Of a stretch of 64,000 nt of DNA, positions 3,516-30,464 are shown piece by piece. Numbering within the stretch: position 1 is the first letter of the stretch; each line of letters begins with the position of its first letter. The notes beneath the pieces were generated by a model, which saw only the letters and a program-made list of their open reading frames with translations, had not been told where the DNA came from and did not search any database. A program made the translations under genes and the position numbers. The DNA lies in the IMG/VR virus record IMGVR_UViG_3300050120_000230, positions 351,410 through 415,409 of that record. One strand, 5' to 3'.

Positions 3516-4858
3516 AACGGAATGTTGTCGTGATAGGCGGTGTCGATCATCGTTTGTATTTGATCCGGCGAAACCAGCTTGAGCACGTTCTTCGCATTCG
3601 GCCCAATCTTGCTGAGCACATCATGCACGGTCATCGGCCGGGCTTTTTTCCAAGACAGTTGTGCCTTGCGTTCGCGGCGCGTTTGTCCGTTCTGCCTGAC
3701 CGGCCGCAGCGCCCACTTCACGATGCTCTCTCCAATATCGGTCACACCGAGTTCGGCGAGAGCTTTCAAAGTGGTGGGTTCCGTCAGCAATGCGATATCG
3801 GCGCGAGTCAGATAGGCTTCCTTGATGAACTCAGGAAGATGTTCTGCGATGACAGACCAAGCCTCTTCGTGAATTTTGGCAATCTCAAACAAATGAGTCA
3901 CGGCGCCGACGCTCAACCGAATGTGAGTGAAGAACCCACTGAGACCATCGCGCACCCCACCATAAAGTTCGTCGCTCGAATAGAACGATTCGAAAAAGTC
4001 GTGCGTATTCTTCGCAGCGAAGTGCGCTGATTTTCCGGTCTTCAACAGTTCCGGCCATTCCTTCATCAGGAACTTGCCTTGTTCGTTGTCGCCACCTTCG
4101 TCATCGCCGTAGAACAGAATGCGAGACAGGTCTTCGACGGAGTCCACCATCACTGGATAGTCTCCAAACGTCTCTGCGGATTGGCGGCGGACGTTATGGA
4201 GCATCTCAGCGACACGCACCGATTGCTTGCTGAAGAACACCGCCTGCGTCGGCTCGTTGGGGTGAATGATACCCTGCCCCGTCTTGTCCGCAACGCCAGA
4301 GTATCCCAGTGCACGGAACACTTTGTTCCATGCGGCGGGGAGACTGCCGCCAAGCTGTCCTGCAACGACCATGGTCACATGCCAGATGGCGAATGCATAT
4401 GGGTTGGTGATGGTGTCGAGGGTTCGAGCCGTCGAGATCGATTTTTCGATGAATGCATCCCAGAACTCATCGTCACGATCTTCATCATAGGCGCGAGAGA
4501 ACTTGGGTAGAATGATGCTGCCATATAGGCCATGCAGCATCTCTTTGTCGGCTTCGAACTCTCCCGCAGAGTAGTGAGCGAGATCGAGAATCTTGCCGAG
4601 TGCTTCTAGGACATAGACAAAAGGACGGTCGGCTGCGAAAGGCACACTACCATGTTCGATTTGATGCCAGTACGCCTGCACAGGATAGGCGTAGATGCCC
4701 AATGGCGTGTTGTAGGTTGTCTTGGGATTGAGGCCAACCTTGGGAATGTCAACGAAGGTGATGTAGACGTTCGGGTCTGAGGCATATTTTCGCAACTCGG
4801 AGACCACGTCGGGTCTCCGTTCAAGCAAAACATTTTCGAAGAGTTCGGAAACGATCAT
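3512..4858 (-). CDS. Hypothetical protein, possibly virion-associated
   Basis: Long ORF, MIVSELFE N-terminus, TAAATA upstream at 4888-4883. Confidence 0.65.
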   Translation of the reverse strand: MIVSELFENVLLERRPDVVSELRKYASDPNVYITFVDIPKVGLNPKTTYNTPLGIYAYPVQAYWHQIEHGSVPFAADRPFVYVLEALGKILDLAHYSAGEFEADKEMLHGLYGSIILPKFSRAYDEDRDDEFWDAFIEKSISTARTLDTITNPYAFAIWHVTMVVAGQLGGSLPAAWNKVFRALGYSGVADKTGQGIIHPNEPTQAVFFSKQSVRVAEMLHNVRRQSAETFGDYPVMVDSVEDLSRILFYGDDEGGDNEQGKFLMKEWPELLKTGKSAHFAAKNTHDFFESFYSSDELYGGVRDGLSGFFTHIRLSVGAVTHLFEIAKIHEEAWSVIAEHLPEFIKEAYLTRADIALLTEPTTLKALAELGVTDIGESIVKWALRPVRQNGQTRRERKAQLSWKKARPMTVHDVLSKIGPNAKNVLKLVSPDQIQTMIDTAYHDNIPF

Positions 4859-4881
4859 TGACCCAAGCACAAATTGCTTGG

Positions 4882-5595
4882 TTATTTAGGCTGTGTGAGC
4901 ACCTTGTATTCATCGAACCCGATCATCCGACTGTAGGGTTCGCCCGTGAATCGCACGATGACCTTAGCGCCCGGTGGGGGTTCTTCACCGTTGACCTGAT
5001 AGTGGTAGGCAAAACTGGTGACATAGTTCGTAGTCGGCCGCGAGCAATGGGCACGGGTAAAACCAGCCCGTTTGATCGTGTCCCAGAAAACCCGGTCACC
5101 GGTGATCCCCTCGCGCGGGTCTTTGAAGCCCCATGACGAGAACGCGGCGAATGCTGGCTTCATGACCAGATAGCAATTCGTGTCGTTGAAGTTCACACCT
5201 TCGGACTCGGCGTCCACGCCCATGACGGTGCCATCCATGCGGATGAGCGTTCGGGTTCCGGTGACGACTTGCACACCGGTTTGCTTCTGCACATGCAAAA
5301 GCGTTTCGATGTGATCGGTCGCGAAATAATTGTCCGCATCGAGAAGGGTGATCGCCTCGGCGCCGCGATTGGAAGCGATCAATCCGGCAATAGCGCGGGG
5401 CGTATCCCCGTAATCGCCACAGGCTGGAATCTTGACGTGGACCACATCCCAATTGTCCACCTCGGGATTGGGATGACCATCGGAAACCATGATGTGCAAG
5501 ACATCGGAATGGGTCTGAGCTTTGACACTATCGTGGCATCGCTTCAAGATTTCGGTAGACTCCTTGAAATAGGGAGTCACTACAGCAACCAGCAT
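4882..5595 (-). CDS. Glycosyltransferase family 2
   Basis: VAVVTPYF...SDG...LLDADN GT-A motifs. Confidence 0.85.
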   Translation of the reverse strand: MLVAVVTPYFKESTEILKRCHDSVKAQTHSDVLHIMVSDGHPNPEVDNWDVVHVKIPACGDYGDTPRAIAGLIASNRGAEAITLLDADNYFATDHIETLLHVQKQTGVQVVTGTRTLIRMDGTVMGVDAESEGVNFNDTNCYLVMKPAFAAFSSWGFKDPREGITGDRVFWDTIKRAGFTRAHCSRPTTNYVTSFAYHYQVNGEEPPPGAKVIVRFTGEPYSRMIGFDEYKVLTQPK

Positions 5596-7689: not shown

Positions 7690-7935
7690 CTACTCCCGCA
7701 CGACCACCGGTAAGAAATCCAGCGTGTCGCGCAGGCCGAACTTGAGCGCGAGCACACGAAGCGCGTCGAGTTGATCGGCCAGCGAGGCTTGAATCTGCGG
7801 TTGCTGGGGAATCGCCTTGACGATGTCCATGTTCAGCGCCACGCGGTGCAGGCGCTCGGTCGGCGTCTCGCCGGGGAGAACTTCCGCTTGGATTTCACGA
7901 AGGACATCCGGGTGAATCGTCGGGGTCATGAGCAC
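7690..7935 (-). CDS. Hypothetical protein
   Basis: ORF in minus-strand gene string, GGAGG RBS. Confidence 0.55.
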   Translation of the reverse strand: MLMTPTIHPDVLREIQAEVLPGETPTERLHRVALNMDIVKAIPQQPQIQASLADQLDALRVLALKFGLRDTLDFLPVVVRE

Positions 7936-7946
7936 CTCCTGCGTAA

Positions 7947-9866: not shown

Positions 9867-10196
9867 ATGACCAAGCAATTGGCTCCTACAGTTCTTCAAG
9901 GCAGTGGAATCGGAAAGATTATCGACACTCCCGAGGAACAGGATGCGTTGGACACTGCTTTGGAGCGGGCACATGAACGTGGTCGGGTCTGGCTGGCAGA
10001 GTTCAAAACGAAGTCCGAAGATGAACAGGTCGAGATCATCGCCGACTACATCTATCACTACGTTCGAGGCGGGGAGATGGGAAGTTTCGGCTTCGATGAG
10101 TTGCCACCAAAACCTCTTCGAAATGAAGATGACAAGTCAATGTGCCAAGAAGCGTATTTGGACGCTGCACGATTTGTCGCACGGCTTTATCGTTGA
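9867..10196 (+). CDS. Hypothetical protein
   Basis: ORF. Confidence 0.5.
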   Translation: MTKQLAPTVLQGSGIGKIIDTPEEQDALDTALERAHERGRVWLAEFKTKSEDEQVEIIADYIYHYVRGGEMGSFGFDELPPKPLRNEDDKSMCQEAYLDAARFVARLYR

Positions 10197-21628: not shown

Positions 21629-21702
21629 GACGAGGTAGCTCAGGGGTTGAGCGTTTGGGCGTGAAGCTCGAAAGGTCGGTGGTTCGAATCCATCTCTCGT
21701 CA
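21629..21702 (+). tRNA. tRNA-like gene with 7-bp anticodon stem and GTGAA loop
   Basis: GACGAGG/TCTCGTC acceptor, GCTC/GAGC D-stem, GGTGG-TTCGAAT-CCATC T-arm. Confidence 0.65.
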
Positions 21703-21703
21703 C

Positions 21704-21810
21704 GGTCGAATAGCTCAGTGGTAGAGCAGCGCGATAATGGAGGGCTCCGATACGTAAGCGGTCCTGTGAAGTTATCGCGTGTGTCGGTGGTTCGAACCCA
21801 TCTTCGACTT
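21704..21810 (+). tRNA. tRNA-like gene with about 35 extra nt in the anticodon arm
   Basis: Canonical acceptor/D/T arms; 10-bp GCGCGATAAT/GTTATCGCGT stem enclosing 32 nt. Confidence 0.7.
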
Positions 21811-21820
21811 CTATTTTTCG

Positions 21821-21848
21821 TTGACGAAAAAATGTGATCCTCTATTAT
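21821..21848 (+). promoter_or_regulatory. Sigma70-like promoter
   Basis: TTGACG-N16-TATTAT ahead of tRNA genes. Confidence 0.55.
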
Positions 21849-21859
21849 GAGGTTGCGTT

Positions 21860-21972
21860 GATTCCGTAGCTCAGTTGGTAGAGCAGCGAACTCATCTAAT
21901 CCCTCCCATGAGGTTACGGGAGGTATTACTTAAATTCGCGGGTCCTCGGTTCGAGTCCGAGCGGAGTCACCA
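21860..21972 (+). tRNA. tRNA (possibly CAT anticodon) with 37-nt insert or intron in the anticodon loop
   Basis: GCGAA/TTCGC stem encloses 44 nt starting CTCAT and ending AA; encoded CCA. Confidence 0.7.
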
Positions 21973-21975
21973 AAT

Positions 21976-22063
21976 GCCCCCGTGGGCCGAGCGGTCGAAG
22001 GCCACGGTCTCTAAAACCGATGGAGAAATCCCAGCGCAGGTTCGAATCCTGTCGGGGGTGCCA
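21976..22063 (+). tRNA. Amber suppressor tRNA (CTA), type II, G73
   Basis: Loop CTCTAAA in CGGT/ACCG stem; long variable arm; GCAGG-TTCGAAT-CCTGT; CCA. Confidence 0.85.
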
Positions 22064-26205: not shown

Positions 26206-26509
26206 GTTTGTTTCCCGTGTTGAACTTCTGGCGAGATTGCCGTGACGAGTCCCCGCCCGGCAATTCGTGTGCCAAAATCTAAAATGGCACTAACGACCCG
26301 CTTGGTGGGTATAAGTCAAACGATGTCGTATATCAGAAACCTCATAAGTCAACAGCTTTGCCATGAGGACGTATAGAAAAACCGTTTTGACGGTGTTGTT
26401 CTAACGTCCTGTGATAAAAATATTTCACTACCGGCCGCACATCCCGTCGTTTGGTTGGCCTTGGTATAGTGTGCCGCAATGTTTCGGCATTCACCTCACG
26501 AGGACTGCC

Positions 26510-26728
26510 ATGAACCATCCGCTCGAACAAGCAGCCAACATCATCGCGACATATATCGAGACCCTGAACGCAACGAAATCCATGTGCGAATGCTGCGGGC
26601 TGACGAAATACGAAAACTTCGATCATGCTCAATCGCGCACGGAATTGAACTCGATGGTCATCAAATTGAGACGCAAGGCTATTTCGAACGAGATCAGCCG
26701 ATCAAAGATGCCCCAGACTGAGACATAA
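26510..26728 (+). CDS. Hypothetical protein (CxxC-like motif)
   Basis: GAGGA RBS before MNHPL. Confidence 0.5.
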   Translation: MNHPLEQAANIIATYIETLNATKSMCECCGLTKYENFDHAQSRTELNSMVIKLRRKAISNEISRSKMPQTET

Positions 26729-26770
26729 ACTGGAACGATTACGGGGTCAGGTTCGACCGTAAATATCGGT

Positions 26771-27109
26771 ATGAACCTGATCCAAAAAATCAACGAGTTT
26801 GTAGCCGCGCGAGCCACACTGCTGATGAGCACGATGTGGTGCGTCTACGTTTTCCTGATTTGGAGTCTGCTGCCGCTCGCGTTTCCACACCTTCAAGCAG
26901 TCGTCTTCTATGTGAGCGGTGGCGTGATCCAACTCGTGGCGCTGCCGCTCATCATGGTGGGTCAGGATGTGTTGAGCCGAAAATCAGAGACAAGGGCTCA
27001 AGAGGATCACGACACCATCATGGCCGCGTTCGAAGAGATCAAGGCTATGCACAAAGAACTTCAACTTGTCCTCGTGCCGAGCCCTGATCCCATCGAGCCT
27101 ATAGAATAG
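26771..27109 (+). CDS. DUF1003-like membrane protein
   Basis: Two TMs then LPLIMVGQ...RAQED; TAAATA at 26760. Confidence 0.65.
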   Translation: MNLIQKINEFVAARATLLMSTMWCVYVFLIWSLLPLAFPHLQAVVFYVSGGVIQLVALPLIMVGQDVLSRKSETRAQEDHDTIMAAFEEIKAMHKELQLVLVPSPDPIEPIE

Positions 27110-27188
27110 TGGCGGTGCGAACCCACGGAGGGCTTTCGCCCTCTTCCGCTTTCAAGGCGGACGCCATAAGCCTCTCGACCACAGCACC
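27110..27188 (-). pseudogene. tRNA-Ser(TGA) with T-arm/acceptor deletion
   Basis: Intact D, anticodon and variable arms, but GTGGGTTCG joins directly to CACCGCCA (about 11 nt missing). Confidence 0.7.
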
Positions 27189-27197
27189 GTATACTAA

Positions 27198-27274
27198 TGG
27201 GGTGATCGACGGGGCTCGAACCCGCGACCTGAAGATTCACAGTCTTCCGCTCTACCAACTGAGCTACGACCACC
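27198..27274 (-). tRNA. tRNA-His(GTG), canonical G-1:C73 type
   Basis: G-GTGGTCG...GAAGA CTGTGAA TCTTC...CGATCAC-C-CCA. Confidence 0.92.
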
Positions 27275-27317
27275 ATAAATGTCGGCTTGACCCGACAAGA
27301 AACGACTTCCTGTCAGT

Positions 27318-27936
27318 TCAAGGCGACAACGCCAGAAGCAGACGGTCGATGCCAATGGCCCAACCCACGCCTTCGGCGTATCGGCCGCCTCCGGCAATCT
27401 GCTTTTGTGCACCGAGCGCCGAACACTCAACCTCGAATCCATCCTCGACGTAGTAGGTCAAGCCACGCTTAACCGAATCGTTGAAGGTGTAATCTAGGCC
27501 GAGCTTGTCGAGACAGTTCCGCAAAAGCCCAGAGGCTTCATCGGCGCCATTCTCAACGTTCCCGAGAATTTCGATCCCAAACTGGGTGAACTCTCGATAG
27601 CGCCCGGCTTGCGGCCGTTCGTAGCGGTAGCAGCGGGAGACATAGAAAATGCGCTTGGAGGCACATTTCTTTGCCCACGACTCTCGCCAGATTTCCTGCA
27701 CCAGTCCAGTCACCTCGGGGATCAAGCAGACCGGGCGGCCTCCTTTGTCCTCGAAAGACCACATCTGATTCACGATCTCCGGCCCGGCCTTGTCAATGAA
27801 GGTCTGCTGACCCCACAAAGCCGGAAGAATTACTTCATCGAAGCCTGCTTCAATGAACCAACCCCCGGAGGATTTCGATGGTCTGGGTATAGGCTCTCGC
27901 CTCATCCCCTTCGATCAATCGTGTTCCACGCAACAT
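27318..27936 (-). CDS. hisS: Minimal histidyl-tRNA synthetase catalytic core; frameshift at G5 run 27866-27862
   Basis: MLRGTRL start after GGAG RBS; CLIPEVT, YRYERPQAGRYREFTQFGIE, RGLTYY, GGGRY, GWAIGIDRL. Confidence 0.75.
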
Positions 27937-27959
27937 TTTCTTCTCTCCAAAAAATTACC

Positions 27960-28068
27960 AAGCTGGGCAGGATTTGAACCTGCGGTTCCCACTCTCGAAC
28001 GGTTATGCGCGACCGATTTGAGCAAGAACTAGCGCATCAGAGCCCTTAGACCTCTCGGGCACCGGCTT
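27960..28068 (-). tRNA. tRNA-like gene with expanded anticodon arm
   Basis: AAGCCGG/CCAGCTT acceptor, CCC/GGG D-stem, GCAGG-TTCAAAT-CCTGC; central insert with TGCGC/GCGCA helix. Confidence 0.6.
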
Positions 28069-28073
28069 GGAAA

Positions 28074-28241
28074 TTATGCATTGCGAAGTTGTGCCTTCAG
28101 TTCAGCAATCTCTTGCATGATCTTCGGGACGCTGACTTCGCGTGATGTTGAATCCTTCTTACCCAATGAGGTACGAAGGAACTGCTCAAGATCGATGATC
28201 CGGTCATGTAGCTTGAGCTTCTTCTTGTCGATGCGGCTCAT
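28074..28241 (-). CDS. 55-aa basic helical protein (not in ORF track)
   Basis: MSRIDKKKLKLHDRII...AQLRNA; ATGA-coupled to upstream ORF. Confidence 0.55.
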   Translation of the reverse strand: MSRIDKKKLKLHDRIIDLEQFLRTSLGKKDSTSREVSVPKIMQEIAELKAQLRNA

Positions 28242-28459
28242 ACGTCGGTCGCCTTCCTGTGATTGCGATAGTCGCGCTCACGCTCGGCCACGATCTTGGA
28301 ATCGACCGTCCCACGAAAAACCTTCATCACTCGCCATCCACGACCTTCGTCGTCGAAATCGAGAATCCTGCCTTCGACCGCGAACTTGGAAGGAAGCCAC
28401 GACGTGAACTCGTCTCCGTTCGCTCGCTTTAGTTTGCATTGCGTATGAGTAGCCATCAT
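28238..28459 (-). CDS. Hypothetical protein inside tRNA operon
   Basis: AAGGAGG RBS. Confidence 0.65.
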   Translation of the reverse strand: MMATHTQCKLKRANGDEFTSWLPSKFAVEGRILDFDDEGRGWRVMKVFRGTVDSKIVAERERDYRNHRKATDV

Positions 28460-28497
28460 GACTGCCTCCTTTGTTATGGCCCGCAGGCCGGTTGAAT

Positions 28498-28571
28498 TGG
28501 TACTGACTGTAAGAATCGAACTTACATAAGCGGTTCCACAAACCGCCGCTCTACCATTGAGCTAAGCCAGC
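28498..28571 (-). tRNA. tRNA-His(GTG), alphaproteobacterial type (no G-1, A73)
   Basis: T-GCTGGCT...GCGGT TTGTGGA ACCGC...AGTCAGT-A-CCA. Confidence 0.9.
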
Positions 28572-28579
28572 ATAGACAG

Positions 28580-28661
28580 TGGAGAGGGCTAGGACTCGAA
28601 CCTAGCATAGCTCTATTGGCAACGGCTGGCTGGCCGCCGGGCTCCGCGCCCCATCCTATCC
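28580..28661 (-). tRNA. Degenerate tRNA-like element, anticodon not assignable
   Basis: CTAGG-TTCGAGT-CCTAG T-arm, GGATAGG/CCTCTCC acceptor, 6-nt anticodon loop. Confidence 0.45.
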
Positions 28662-28677
28662 GTAAAGTGCGGTTGCT

Positions 28678-28761
28678 TGGTGGGCCGGGTTGGATTCGAA
28701 CCAACGCGTCTTTCGAAACCGGGTTACAGCCGGTCGCCTTCAACCACTCAGCCACCGTCCC
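28678..28761 (-). tRNA. tRNA-Tyr(GTA)
   Basis: ACCGG CTGTAAC CCGGT; A73-CCA. Confidence 0.92.
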
Positions 28762-28785
28762 ACTAAGGAACCGCACTTTAGTATT

Positions 28786-28862
28786 TGGAGTTCACGGTGA
28801 GACTCGCACTCACTTTAACGAGGGTTGCAATCTCGTGCCTCGGCTTCTTCGGCCTCGTGAAC
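28786..28862 (-). tRNA. tRNA-Cys(GCA)
   Basis: Loop TTGCAAC; U73-CCA; variant T-loop TGCGAGT. Confidence 0.85.
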
Positions 28863-28865
28863 ATA

Positions 28866-28950
28866 TGGTGGGTAGGTGCCGGATCGAACGACTCCCCGCT
28901 AGAGAAGGGATTTACAATCCCCGTGTCAGAACCACTGACTTTACCTACCC
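28866..28950 (-). tRNA. tRNA-Tyr(GTA), second divergent copy
   Basis: GGGA TTGTAAA TCCC; GGGTAGG/CCTACCC-A-CCA. Confidence 0.85.
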
Positions 28951-28954
28951 GTAT

Positions 28955-29040
28955 TGGCGGAAAATGGAGGCATCGAACCTCTGACCTTTCGGTCACTACG
29001 AGTTAGCAACTCGCTCGGGGAGCCAACCCCAGCATTTTCC
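28955..29040 (-). tRNA. tRNA-Ser(GCT)
   Basis: CGAG TTGCTAA CTCG; long variable arm; G73-CCA. Confidence 0.88.
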
Positions 29041-29041
29041 G

Positions 29042-29127
29042 TGGCGGACGGTGGAAGCATCGAACTTCTGACCTTGCGGTCACTACACGCTTCCAACGTG
29101 TTCGGGGAGCCAACCCCAGCACCGTCC
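29042..29127 (-). tRNA. tRNA-Ser(GGA)
   Basis: CACG TTGGAAG CGTG; long variable arm; G73-CCA. Confidence 0.88.
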
Positions 29128-29135
29128 GTTTGTAT

Positions 29136-29223
29136 TGGAGGAAGGTGGAGGCATCGAACCTCTGACCCTTGCAGGTCACTACTGTTTTCGAAACAGTTTG
29201 GGGAGCCGACCCCAGCACCTTCC
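29136..29223 (-). tRNA. tRNA-Ser(CGA)
   Basis: CTGT TTCGAAA ACAG; long variable arm; U73-CCA. Confidence 0.85.
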
Positions 29224-29236
29224 ATAGGAGAATTAA

Positions 29237-29321
29237 TGGCGGTAGGTGAAGGAATCGAACCCTCAACCTTTCGGTTGGGACGGTGTTCAAAACCGCTTGA
29301 CCACCTTGGCCCCCACCTACC
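29237..29321 (-). tRNA. tRNA-Ser(TGA)
   Basis: GCGGT TTTGAAC ACCGT; long variable arm; G73-CCA. Confidence 0.88.
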
Positions 29322-29376
29322 CTCATTAATTCTCCTAGCCTACTTTTTCGTCATCCTTTCCGGCCGCATGGCCAAT

Positions 29377-29405
29377 AAAAAACCCGGTCCTTTGAAGGAA
29401 CCGGG
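29377..29405 (-). terminator. Attenuator terminator 2
   Basis: CCCGGTTCCTTCAAAGGACCGGG-TTTTTT on the minus strand. Confidence 0.85.
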
Positions 29406-29411
29406 AGCATT

Positions 29412-29439
29412 AAAAAACCCGGCGTCCTTGGGAGCCGGG
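29412..29439 (-). terminator. Attenuator terminator 1
   Basis: CCCGGCTCCCAAGGACGCCGGG-TTTTTT on the minus strand. Confidence 0.85.
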
Positions 29440-29467
29440 TGAGAAGTTTTTGAGACCTTTGGGAACC

Positions 29468-29563
29468 TTAGATTTTGGTTCCAGCATCGCTCATACGCTT
29501 CGCACCCTTGCTCGAAGAGCAATGGCTGGAATAGCAATACGAGTATGAACTGATAGCGATCAT
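29468..29563 (-). CDS. Ser/Tyr/Cys/His-rich leader peptide of the tRNA operon (31 aa; not in ORF track)
   Basis: AGGAGG-N7-ATG; MIAISSYSYCYSSHCSSSKGAKRMSDAGTKI*. Confidence 0.85.
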   Translation of the reverse strand: MIAISSYSYCYSSHCSSSKGAKRMSDAGTKI

Positions 29564-29632
29564 GATACTGCCTCCTGCTCGGGTTGACGTTGCGTTAAAA
29601 AGTTGAACGGCCCAAAGCCGCTCTGGAATTTG

Positions 29633-29663
29633 TATTTATGCACGGACTTCAAACGCCGGTCAA
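29633..29663 (-). promoter_or_regulatory. Promoter of leader/tRNA operon
   Basis: TTGACC-N17-CATAAATA on the minus strand. Confidence 0.6.
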
Positions 29664-29691
29664 CATGTTTCGTTGCACGAAAGAAAATTAA

Positions 29692-29925
29692 TCAGAGCCA
29701 GAACATTTTGAAGAGGGCGGCGTCCTCAGAGAACGAGAATTGCAGTTCACATCGGGTCATTTGTTTTTTGATACGAACTGGGTTACCCAACTTATCTAGC
29801 CACTCTTGAACATCCGACGACGGCGTGACCACAAACCACATACTTCGTGGGTTTTCCTCATCTCGGCATCTTGTGAGGAGATGCGGGAACTCCAACTGTC
29901 TCACAAGAATAGTTCGTCTAGACAT
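29692..29925 (-). CDS. Small motif-family protein
   Basis: FSEDAALFKMFWL. Confidence 0.6.
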   Translation of the reverse strand: MSRRTILVRQLEFPHLLTRCRDEENPRSMWFVVTPSSDVQEWLDKLGNPVRIKKQMTRCELQFSFSEDAALFKMFWL

Positions 29926-29928
29926 AGG

Positions 29929-30126
29929 AGACGGTCGATCCCACCAAAAGCAATCCGGCCGAGCACGCAGCCACTAGCATTGTAAAACTCCCCGCTACCG
30001 CTGTGTAGAACAACGGACCTTACACGGGGTCGTGGCTAATCTAGCGGTCTTTCGACCTTCTCATTCAGTTGCAAAGTCCCCGGTATGTGTCTGATGTTTA
30101 ATCCCGAGGAATGGAACCAACCGTCT
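29929..30126 (-). ncRNA. Structured RNA candidate, about 200 nt
   Basis: 17-bp closing helix with G-U pairs; GGTC-GAAA-GACC; nested AGCCAC/GTGGCT, CCCCG/CGGGG, CCGTTGT/ACAGCGG. Confidence 0.55.
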
Positions 30127-30137
30127 TCTACTTTGTA

Positions 30138-30464
30138 TCAGAGCCAGAACAATTTGAACAGCGCGGCATCTTCTACCTTCTCGAACGAGAGGCGGCAGTT
30201 GGACATTCCCGGTCGGACAGTCACCAGACCCTTCATATTTTGAGAACACCATTGCTCAACATCGTGATTGAGCTTGGAAAGAATAAAGACATTTTGATCG
30301 TGCGGATCATCTTGCTCATACGTTTCGAGCAAACGTTCATGCTCGCGGCCGAACAGGCTGATGAGACGATCAGCGGGCGTCATGAGAACCGCTAAATCCC
30401 CGTAGGCAAACCCTTGCGAAATCACTTTCGTTACACTGCCCATTGTTGTTCCAAGCGCATACAC
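30138..30464 (-). CDS. Small motif-family protein
   Basis: FEKVEDAALFKLFWL. Confidence 0.6.
   Translation of the reverse strand: MYALGTTMGSVTKVISQGFAYGDLAVLMTPADRLISLFGREHERLLETYEQDDPHDQNVFILSKLNHDVEQWCSQNMKGLVTVRPGMSNCRLSFEKVEDAALFKLFWL

Follow-up and report, generated by a model that had tools for sequence, protein, structure and literature searches.

Why would a giant phage place a tiny open reading frame (ORF), apparently translated and made of a narrow panel of codons, together with two transcription terminators, in front of a block of its own tRNA genes? The question is raised by a locus on the minus strand of a 64,000-nucleotide stretch of the virus record IMGVR_UViG_3300050120_000230 (the whole stretch analysed, referred to here as the window). 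The initial annotation proposed that this is a ribosome-stalling attenuator, whose sensor codons mirror the anticodons of the tRNA operon that it gates. We first asked whether the elements are present, and the answer is that they all are, in the following arrangement, listed in the order of transcription.

29635-29663, minus strand: σ70-like promoter, TTGACC (29663-29658), 17-nt spacer, CATAAA (29640-29635)
29605-29623, minus strand: 5'-UTR hairpin just after the predicted transcription start, possibly acting in stability or pausing
29571-29576, minus strand: Shine-Dalgarno (SD) sequence AGGAGG, 7 nt upstream of the ATG at 29563
29468-29563, minus strand: leader ORF, 31 codons plus TAA, MIAISSYSYCYSSHCSSSKGAKRMSDAGTKI
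29510-29551, minus strand: regulatory codon run (codons 5-18)
29498-29513, minus strand: region 2, the predicted 5' strand of the antiterminator (GAGCAAGGGUGCGAAG)
29462-29482, minus strand: hairpin spanning the stop codon (GGAACC...GGUUCC), a possible RNA polymerase pause or spacer element
29412-29446, minus strand: region 3 plus terminator 1 (T1), with the antiterminator 3' strand 29446-29432 overlapping the T1 hairpin 29440-29417, then the U-run to 29412
29377-29405, minus strand: terminator 2 (T2), hairpin 29405-29383 plus U-run
28955-29321, minus strand: tRNA-Ser(UGA) 29321-29237, Ser(CGA) 29223-29136, Ser(GGA) 29127-29042, Ser(GCU) 29040-28955
28498-28950, minus strand: tRNA-Tyr(GUA) about 28950-28866, tRNA-Cys(GCA) 28862-28789, tRNA-Tyr(GUA) 28761-28678, a tRNA-like element with a 6-nt anticodon loop 28661-28579, tRNA-His(GUG) 28571-28498
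28074-28459, minus strand: two small overlapping ORFs inside the operon (73 aa, 28459-28238; 55 aa, 28241-28074)
27953-28066, minus strand: 114-nt class-II-like tRNA-shaped element with a 21-nt insert in the anticodon loop
27318-27936, minus strand: HisRS-like catalytic-core gene split by a conserved +1 frame break, N-terminal ORF 27936-27850, core 27905-27318
27110-27273, minus strand: tRNA-His(GUG) 27273-27198 and a degenerate tRNA-Ser(UGA)-like element 27188-27110; end of the operon, with a convergent gene beyond

The promoter was missed by a strict scan because position 6 of its -10 element is A, but it was recovered by direct reading and by pattern matching, and it is conserved, at the same position, as TTGACG-N17-CATAAA in L045 (the related jumbo-phage contigs and their leaders are referred to here by L numbers). 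TTGAC-type sites are found 61-127 nt upstream of the ATG in 10 of 12 leaders, and σ70-type promoters are enriched in the window, with 14 found against 2.65 expected. This evidence is at the level of consensus only. All relatives have an SD-like purine run 7-14 nt before their start codon. The 5'-UTR hairpin was flagged as terminator-like by the terminator scan and is present in the minimum free energy (MFE) fold, while the hairpin spanning the stop codon has a compensatory version, GGGACC/GGUCUC, in L045.

Of the tRNA genes, ARAGORN recognized four for Ser (tga, cga, gga, gct), one Tyr(gta) and two His(gtg). Rfam adds a tRNA at 28862-28789, carrying UUGCAA, which is read as Cys(GCA), the segment at about 28950-28866 folds as a Tyr(GUA) cloverleaf (z = -3.1), and the Ser(UGA)-like element at the end of the operon is sub-threshold, at 23.9 bits. 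The initial annotation omitted two tRNA-like elements with unreadable anticodons as well as the two small ORFs. One of the former, at 28661-28579, is 76% similar to the L046 tRNA-Ser(UGA), while the other, at 28066-27953, is conserved at 88% over 110 nt at the same position in L045. The two small ORFs gave no Pfam or PHROG hits. The protein gene, described in the initial annotation as a mini-HisRS, matches the catalytic core only (Pfam tRNA-synt_His, profile positions 24-143 of 308, E = 1.5e-17). The protein is about 205 aa, it has no anticodon-binding domain, and it needs a +1 frame change, the frame break being conserved in L045, L025, L026, and L046. Thus, it does not satisfy the description of a histidyl-tRNA synthetase with a class II catalytic core and a C-terminal anticodon-binding domain in one reading frame, and we refer to it as HisRS-like.

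As to the codon run, codons 5-18 are AGT TCA TAC TCG TAT TGC TAT TCC AGC CAT TGC TCT TCG AGC, which amounts to eight Ser codons covering all six Ser codon types, three Tyr codons covering both types, two Cys TGC and one His CAT, and nothing else. The six-frame frequency of Ser, Tyr, Cys, and His taken together is 0.176, so 3.4e-6 runs of 14 are expected in the window by chance, and the next-longest mixed run anywhere in the window is 6. The match between the run and the array holds in both directions: all 14 codons are decodable by the array tRNAs, and all 7 anticodon species of the array are probed by at least one codon.

Is this match retained in relatives? In related jumbo-phage contigs, we found at least 12 such leaders, in eight amino-acid families, each tracking its own array. 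Examples of the runs are SSSSHCSSSHS, with an array for Ser/His/Cys and no Tyr on either side; LYPMPCYP, with Tyr/Pro/Leu/Met/Cys; HDHDWHDD, with Asp/Trp/His; LPLPLHHLPLYP, with His/Pro/Tyr/Leu; YHYEYEREY, with His/Tyr/Glu; and QQQQSQSSQSSSS, with Gln/Ser. By contig, the sets are {S,Y,C,H} in the window, L045, L002/L025, and L046; {S,H,C} in L003/L026, which have no Tyr codon and no tRNA-Tyr, and whose Cys tRNA was verified; {L,Y,P,M,C} in L010/L033; {Q,S} in L016/L039; {H,D,W} in L122; {L,P,H,Y} in L095/L083; {H,Y,E} and, separately, {L,N,P} in L032; and {L,H,S,Q,P,Y} in L030. Over 13 runs, 146/158 codons are decodable, and every array anticodon species is probed in 11 of the 13. Some matches are imperfect, however: L016 has all six Ser codons but only Ser(GCU) in the immediate array, and L032b has three Val codons, with no tRNA-Val found. 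In an unbiased scan upstream of 186 arrays, 9 same-strand runs were detected at log10P <= -5, against 0 on the opposite strand, although one of the nine, L041, was later rejected as lying inside a CDS, and a permuted-array test gave P = 0.0005. Substitutions between relatives stay inside the permitted codon set (for example, Tyr7 to His), while the C-terminal half of the peptide is not conserved. Interestingly, three independent leaders use all six codons of a six-fold amino acid within 7-8 draws (Ser in the window, Ser in L016, Leu in L030), for which our own arithmetic under a uniform null gives 0.114 x 0.054 x 0.054. The device is not universal, as other tRNA clusters in the same window (7640-7453 and 21629-22063) sit directly behind promoters, with no leader.

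Could a ribosome on this run control termination? One or two terminators are present in every relative, and in 12/12 leaders a segment directly 3' of the run is predicted to capture the 5' arm of the terminator, the pairing being lost once the ribosome footprint passes the run. In the window, region 2 is predicted to pair with 29446-29432 when a ribosome is stalled on codons 5-13, capturing 8 of 10 nt of the T1 5' arm (dG -32.4 kcal/mol, against a shuffle mean of -20.2), with 0/300 shuffles doing as well; the pairing is lost from codon 16 onward, with 0/10 captured at codon 16 and at the stop codon. Across the 12 leaders, the numbers of shuffles doing as well were 0, 5, 2, 0, 0, 8, 0, 0, 0, 0, 7, and 1 of 300. 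In the window, a single antiterminator is predicted to disarm both terminators through a relay, as the 5' arm of T2 can pair with the freed 3' arm of T1 (the 4:5 relay, -13.8 kcal/mol). In the free-RNA MFE structure of the window leader, the codon run pairs with region 2, and both terminators form. In these predictions, the ribosome was modeled simply as a block on all RNA 5' of its leading edge, and equilibrium MFE folding of the full-length RNA switches cleanly in only some leaders (the window, L003, L009), while in L010, L016, and L002 the switch appears only in the nascent-RNA, co-transcriptional proxy. Finally, the scans found no promoter between the terminators and the first tRNA, and in relatives this spacer can be as short as 10 nt (L032a) or 23 nt (L122), leaving no room for a second promoter, with 46-67 nt in five others; L030, in contrast, has 640 nt and a weak promoter-like site before its first tRNA.

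Taken together, these data support the central inference of the initial annotation, and the locus is most likely a ribosome-mediated (leader-peptide) transcription attenuator gating a phage tRNA operon, to which we assign a probability of roughly 0.78, the evidence being entirely computational. In the proposed mechanism, a host-type RNA polymerase starts at the promoter near 29663 and transcribes the leader, and a ribosome loads at AGGAGG/ATG and reads the 14-codon panel. If all the cognate aminoacyl-tRNAs are plentiful, the ribosome runs through the panel, region 2 is covered or left behind the ribosome, T1 forms, with T2 as a back-up, and transcription stops before the tRNA genes. If any one of these aminoacyl-tRNAs is scarce, the ribosome stalls inside the panel, region 2 stays free and pairs with the 5' arm of T1, the released 3' arm of T1 pairs with the 5' arm of T2, and, with neither terminator formed, the polymerase reads into the genes for Ser x4, Tyr, Cys, Tyr, His, the HisRS-like protein, His, and the degenerate Ser. 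The products would relieve the stall, closing a negative-feedback loop on tRNA supply with codon-level resolution. Translation of the leader, the direction of regulation in vivo and the coupling of transcription to translation in this phage are inferred, and attenuation could not work if the phage separates the two processes, as nucleus-forming jumbo phages do. The candidate triggers are phage codon demand, decay of host tRNAs during infection, tRNA-cleaving defenses, and starvation. With somewhat less assurance, it seems probable that jumbo phages carry a previously unrecognized class of regulatory element, modular "tRNA supply meters," in each of which a translated panel of codons, one or more per isoacceptor, gates transcription of exactly the matching tRNA genes, the panel evolving in step with the array. 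Such elements would let a virus monitor the decoding capacity of the host codon by codon, and they would respond to any loss of specific tRNAs, including cleavage by anticodon-nuclease defenses, by making replacements on demand.

Of the alternatives, the one that survives best refines this reading rather than replacing it. The initial annotation suggested an inducible counter-defense or starvation response, and in the narrower, counter-defense version the attenuator would be a tripwire for host anticodon nucleases or other tRNA-depleting immunity, switching on replacement tRNAs only under attack. Every isoacceptor is sampled separately, which is what a sensor for loss of a single tRNA species would need, phage tRNAs appear able to rescue infection from tRNA-cleaving systems, and the tight double terminator suggests that the array is kept off by default. 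However, the amino-acid sets differ widely between phages (S/Y/C/H, H/D/W, L/P/H/Y, Q/S, L/Y/P/M/C) and do not map onto the target set of any one known nuclease, and no defense or anti-defense genes were linked to the locus here. A plain feedback loop of supply and demand explains the one-to-one codon/anticodon match more simply and includes the counter-defense reading as a special case, and a purpose specifically in counter-defense, while possible, remains doubtful.

Less likely is that the leader is translated and senses the same tRNAs but that the output is not intrinsic termination, with stalling instead altering Rho access, RNase processing or transcript stability, or with the terminators mainly overridden by a phage antitermination factor at a set time in infection. 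The full-length MFE, which does not switch in every leader, leaves some space for this view, but canonical GC-rich hairpins followed by U-runs are present in all leaders, together with statistically supported competing helices that overlap the 5' arm of the terminator. A translation-independent sensor, in which the run pairs directly with tRNA anticodons, is improbable. While codon/anticodon covariation and a choice between terminator and antiterminator are also the hallmarks of T-box leaders, in every case the run is in frame with an SD-preceded start codon and ends at a stop codon, there are 8-19 contiguous in-frame codons rather than one specifier, Rfam finds no T-box or other riboswitch in 26500-30200 at E <= 1, and the position of the antiterminator just 3' of the run fits a ribosome footprint. 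The weakest alternative, of an independent gene for, for example, a Ser/Tyr/Cys/His-rich peptide with its own terminators and a coincidental codon match, can point to the layout of promoter, ORF, and terminator as a complete small transcription unit and to a very weak promoter-like site just before the first tRNA (ATGACG-N18-ATTAAT, 29354-29325, read by eye), but it is strongly disfavored by the recurrence of the match with eight different amino-acid sets, by the unrelated C-terminal halves of the peptides, by the short spacers in some relatives, and by the fact that the weak site would start transcription inside the tRNA.

How does this element compare with known systems? Phage tRNA arrays, such as those of T4, T5, mycobacteriophages, and the "huge phages," are likewise clusters of phage-encoded tRNAs, often with homing endonucleases and synthetase fragments nearby, and are thought to compensate for codon-usage mismatch, host tRNA decay or tRNA-targeting defenses. 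To our knowledge, and in full-text literature searches, their expression has been described as promoter-driven and temporal, not as gated by a codon-matched leader peptide. T-box riboswitches also couple codon-anticodon specificity to a terminator/antiterminator decision for tRNA-related genes, but they bind tRNA directly, without translation, through Stem I and the T-box bulge, none of which is detected here. The pheST attenuator (pheM leader) of E. coli applies leader-peptide attenuation to a gene of the translation apparatus, sensing charged tRNA, and the operon described here also contains a synthetase-like gene and a His codon in the leader; however, pheM senses one amino acid and controls a synthetase, while here the main cargo is 9-13 tRNA genes and the codon set mirrors the whole array. 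The classical leader-peptide attenuators of amino-acid biosynthetic operons in Enterobacteria (trpL, hisL, pheL, leuL, and the multivalent thrL and ilvL) share with it a promoter, an SD plus short ORF, a run of regulatory codons, a region-2/3 antiterminator competing with a region-3/4 intrinsic terminator, region-1/2 pairing in untranslated RNA, and a read-out by ribosome speed on specific codons, and, as in thrL and ilvL, several amino acids are sensed by one leader. What differs is that the regulated genes are the tRNAs themselves, plus a HisRS-like gene, rather than biosynthetic enzymes, that the panel samples each isoacceptor, using all synonymous codons, instead of repeating one codon, that up to six amino acids are mixed, that the element is encoded by a phage, and that, in the window, a single antiterminator controls two tandem terminators through a 4:5 relay.

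The 415-kb contig to which the window belongs, IMGVR_UViG_3300050120_000230 in IMG/VR, is a jumbo-phage genome. Reading its minus strand from 29800 to 27000 of the window confirms, base for base, the initial annotation of a leader ORF and tandem terminators placed in front of a Ser/Tyr/Cys/His tRNA operon. The elements discussed below are as follows.

29663-29635 (-): TTGACC-N17-CATAAA promoter
29623-29605 (-): stable hairpin, GAGCGGCUUUGGGCCGUUC, at about +5 to +23 of the predicted leader transcript, followed by AACUUUUUAA; it may be a 5' stabiliser or a pause element
29576-29571 (-): AGGAGG, seven bases before the ATG at 29563
29563-29468 (-): 31-codon leader ORF encoding MIAISSYSYCYSSHCSSSKGAKRMSDAGTKI, codons 5-18 of which (the panel) are AGT TCA TAC TCG TAT TGC TAT TCC AGC CAT TGC TCT TCG AGC
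29513-29498 (-): region 2, GAGCAAGGGUGCGAAG, predicted antiterminator strand
29440-29412 (-): terminator 1 (T1), GC-rich hairpin with a U-run
29405-29377 (-): terminator 2 (T2), GC-rich hairpin with a U-run
about 28950-28866 (-): Tyr(GUA) cloverleaf
28862-28789 (-): tRNA read as Cys(GCA)
28661-28579 (-): tRNA-like gene with a 6-nt anticodon loop
28066-27953 (-): 114-nt class-II-like tRNA-shaped element
27936-27318 (-): HisRS-like gene
27188-27110 (-): sub-threshold Ser(UGA)-like element

Downstream of the terminators, ARAGORN identifies Ser(UGA), Ser(CGA), Ser(GGA), Ser(GCU), Tyr(GUA) and two His(GUG), while Rfam adds the tRNA at 28862-28789, whose loop reads UUGCAA, so Cys(GCA), and the element at about 28950-28866 folds into its cloverleaf with z = -3.1. 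The anticodons of two tRNA-shaped elements cannot be read. One of these, at 28661-28579 (ARAGORN 'tRNA-???', anticodon 'gc'), is 76% similar to the tRNA-Ser(UGA) of L046 (loci examined for comparison are designated by L numbers), and it may be degenerate or an unusual decoder. The other, at 28066-27953, has normal-looking D and T arms but a 21-nt insert in the anticodon loop and no CCA end, and it is conserved at 88% over 110 nt at the same position upstream of the HisRS-like gene in locus L045 (4879-4988); it could be an intron-containing tRNA or a tRNA mimic. The operon also holds two small ORFs, of 73 and 55 aa, without Pfam or PHROG hits, and a HisRS-like catalytic-core gene (Pfam tRNA-synt_His, E = 1.5e-17), and a convergent gene ends the unit at about 27110. 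Interestingly, the HisRS-like gene is split by a +1 frame break that is conserved in five phages (the window; L045, ~5000-5160; L025, ~9960-10120; L026, ~9960-10120; L046, ~2660-2830). A ~28-codon N-terminal ORF (MLRGTR...LRGLVH*) is followed by the catalytic core in the +1 frame, and skipping one base after a conserved CUN-CGG-(G/A) site restores ...LR-G-WFIEAGF..., which matches HisRS motif spacing. This looks like programmed +1 frameshifting rather than a sequencing error or a pseudogene, and a motif scan found the break in 7 of 18 homologues and no intact version. Immediately upstream of the leader's promoter lies one of three small paralogous ORFs (29925-29692, 30464-30138 and 38202-37993, all on the minus strand; 77, 108 and 69 aa, respectively) that end in the same motif, ...AALFK(M/L)FW(L/SGK); the 77-aa ORF has no Pfam or PHROG hits.

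The composition of the panel is not expected by chance. The codons for S, Y, C and H together make up 17.6% of six-frame codons in the window, which gives 3.4e-6 expected runs of 14, and the next-longest mixed run anywhere in the 64 kb is 6. At the codon level, all 14 panel codons can be read by tRNAs of the array, 9 of them by Watson-Crick pairing at the third position, and, conversely, all 7 anticodon species in the array are probed by at least one panel codon.

The decisive test is presented by the relatives. A DNA search of GenBank phages with the whole locus recovered no close relative, only tRNA and HisRS-like hits. The HisRS-like gene was used as an anchor to retrieve 20 other jumbo-phage loci from IMG/VR and 80 from metagenomes. 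The same module, consisting of a TTGAC-type promoter, an SD, a short ORF, one or more terminators and a tRNA array, recurs in these, and its codon panel follows the array. Over 13 runs, 146 of 158 panel codons are decodable by the cognate array.

Table. Leader panels and the tRNA arrays behind them in related loci.
Locus	Leader panel	Array behind it
L045	SSHSYCYSSHCSSS	Ser x4, Cys, Tyr x2, His x2
L002/L025	SSHSYCYSSSYHS	same amino-acid set
L046	YSSYSHCYSSHSSY	Ser, His, Tyr, Cys
L003/L026	SSSSHCSSSHS (no Tyr codon)	Ser x4, His x2, Cys (the Cys was missed by ARAGORN); no tRNA-Tyr
L010/L033	LYPMPCYP (CTT TAC CCA ATG CCG TGC TAT CCC)	Tyr(GUA), Pro(UGG), Leu(GAG), Pro(CGG), Met, Cys, Pro(GGG)
L122	HDHDWHDD	exactly Asp, Trp, His
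L095/L083	LPLPLHHLPLYP	13 tRNAs, only His, Pro, Tyr, Leu
L032 (a)	YHYEYEREY	His, Tyr, His, Glu x3, Tyr x2; four of them read by eye (one also an Rfam hit)
L032 (b)	LNLVLNPVNLLGLNPNQLP	Leu, Pro and three Asn; Val unmatched
L016/L039	QQQQSQSSQSSSS	three tRNA-Gln and a probable Ser(GCU)
L030	two runs using all six Leu codons plus Ser, Gln, His, Pro, Tyr	only Gln, Tyr, His, Leu, Pro, Ser

A first scan for low-diversity ORFs was far too noisy and was replaced by scans anchored on the arrays. An unbiased scan of 900 nt upstream of 186 distinct arrays, for runs drawn only from the amino-acid set of the array, gave 9 hits at log10P <= -5 on the coding strand and none on the opposite strand, although one of the nine ('RRRKRQRR' in L041) was rejected as lying off-frame inside a longer CDS with no terminator. 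Likewise, a candidate in L007 ('MPLLPLIP', 7866-7940) was rejected as lying inside a tRNA-like sequence. Permuting arrays among candidate ORFs gave P = 0.0005, which is conservative because related leaders inflate the null. Formal covariation statistics on five related leaders were precluded by too few sequences and too many indels. Between close relatives, substitutions inside the panel stay within the permitted set (Tyr7 to His, for example), while the C-terminal halves of the peptides diverge freely, a pattern that is predicted by selection on codon identity rather than on a peptide. In addition, three independent leaders use all six codons of a six-fold amino acid within 7-8 occurrences, with probabilities, by our own arithmetic under a uniform null, of 0.114, 0.054 and 0.054. 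Cys/His-rich ORFs that, judged by eye only, look like HNH homing endonucleases are inserted between tRNA genes inside the attenuated arrays of L003 (~4740-5205) and of another locus, L009 (10876-11405), recalling the homing endonucleases in the T4 tRNA region.

Of the cultured relatives, only Sinorhizobium phage Phosso (PV764938.1; L125) carries the HisRS-like gene, and its first 30 kb contains dispersed single tRNAs and no leader. Its annotated 'hypothetical protein 599' (L125 281-445, within 195-500; 54 codons, GTG start, SD AAGGA) lies behind TTGACA-N16/17-TATAAA, is followed by a -18.7 kcal/mol terminator and then a large tRNA array, and has a C-terminus (...GGTKII*) resembling that of the window leader. 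However, it uses 19 amino-acid types, and two σ70-like promoters lie between its terminator and the array; it could be a broad-panel relative in a cultured phage, but it remains only a candidate.

As to the mechanism, each leader was folded with the ribosome modelled as a block extending up to 12 nt past the A-site codon, using the nascent RNA up to the loop of terminator 1. In the window, with the A site on codons 5-13, 8 of the 10 nucleotides of the 5' arm of T1 are predicted to be captured by region 2, through the helices GAGC:GCUC, GGGUG:CACCC and GAAG:CUUC, with a dG of -32.4 kcal/mol against -20.2 +/- 3.2 for shuffles, and 0/300 shuffles do as well. At codon 16, and again with the ribosome at the stop codon, none of the arm is captured, and from codon 16 on T1 forms. 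The same behaviour appears in all 12 leaders tested, the antiterminator being positioned directly 3' of the panel and lost once the footprint passes it, with the counts of shuffles doing as well at 0, 5, 2, 0, 0, 8, 0, 0, 0, 0, 7 and 1 of 300. Full-length equilibrium folding, however, switches cleanly only in some leaders (the window, L003 and L009, but not L010, L016 or L002), and the structural case thus rests on the co-transcriptional proxy and the shuffle controls, not on probing. For the tandem terminators of the window, the freed 3' arm of T1 is predicted to pair with the 5' arm of T2 in a 9-bp helix at -13.8 kcal/mol, against -14.0 for T2 itself, and therefore one upstream decision would disarm both terminators; L045 and L025 retain an equally stable 4:5 duplex. 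In untranslated RNA, the panel is predicted to pair with region 2 and both terminators form, which is the classical default-off state.

No promoter between the terminators and the first tRNA was found, either by a strict promoter scan or by a relaxed scan of the spacers in ten loci. The spacer is 10 nt in the first leader of L032, 23 nt in L122 and 46-67 nt in five others, and in those phages the tRNAs can only be reached by read-through. In the window the only weak candidate, read by eye, is ATGACG-N18-ATTAAT at 29354-29325, which would start transcription inside the tRNA. Promoters of the σ70 type are strongly enriched in the window, 14 found against 2.65 expected, which fits transcription by host-type polymerase and hence coupling to translation. 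Not all of the tRNAs of this phage are attenuated, as other tRNA clusters in the same window have plain promoters and no leader. One example is the tRNA-Cys(GCA) and tRNA-Ala(UGC) pair at 7640-7453 (-), which sits directly behind a near-consensus promoter (TTGACA-N17-TAGATT) with no leader or terminator, so that the phage has a second, ungated Cys tRNA. Another is the cluster at 21629-22063 (+), only partly called by ARAGORN, in which, read by eye, two tRNA genes have inserts in the anticodon region (about 21706-21810 and 21862-21975), and a class-II tRNA has the anticodon CUA (21976-22063), a potential amber suppressor. CUA tRNAs also occur in L002 (two copies) and in Phosso, where one is annotated as tRNA-Pyl(cta).

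Overall, the interpretation of the locus as a ribosome-stalling attenuator is supported in silico. Stalling on any panel codon should lead to read-through, more of exactly those tRNAs, relief of the stall and then termination, a closed negative-feedback loop on tRNA supply with isoacceptor resolution, and this is the simplest reading of a one-to-one match between panel and array. The counter-defence role proposed in the initial annotation is a special case of this loop that the data neither support nor exclude; the amino-acid sets vary widely between phages and do not match the target range of any single known nuclease. A T-box is dismissed, as neither a T-box nor another riboswitch was recognized by Rfam (a weak 'anti-hemB' match at the terminators, 25 bits against a gathering score of 49.5, is a generic double-hairpin resemblance), and as the codons lie in a frame inferred to be translated.

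If confirmed, this regulation would show that phage tRNA arrays are controlled on demand rather than simply carried, which bears on the question of why large phages hoard tRNAs, whether for codon usage, host tRNA decay or escape from tRNA-targeting immunity. It would also provide a natural, compact and multiplexed sensor of individual aminoacyl-tRNA pools, with panels that are short, modular and apparently re-programmable by evolution, and thus attractive as reporters of decoding capacity, and the relay by which one antiterminator disarms two terminators would be a new piece of RNA logic. The covariation, in turn, gives a simple computational signature for annotating such leaders, which gene callers currently miss or label as hypothetical proteins.

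In comparison with known systems, the defining features of a leader-peptide attenuator that can be assessed from sequence are present or predicted here. Leader-peptide attenuation has been a textbook mechanism for fifty years, with amino-acid biosynthesis, a few synthetase genes and resistance genes as its known targets. What appears to be new is the target, tRNA genes, the owner, phages, the isoacceptor-sampling panel, and the two-terminator relay, nothing describing such an element having been found in full-text searches, albeit limited to open-access papers and preprints. The closest analogues are the multivalent thr and ilv leaders, which sense several amino acids, and the pheST leader, which regulates a gene of the translation apparatus.
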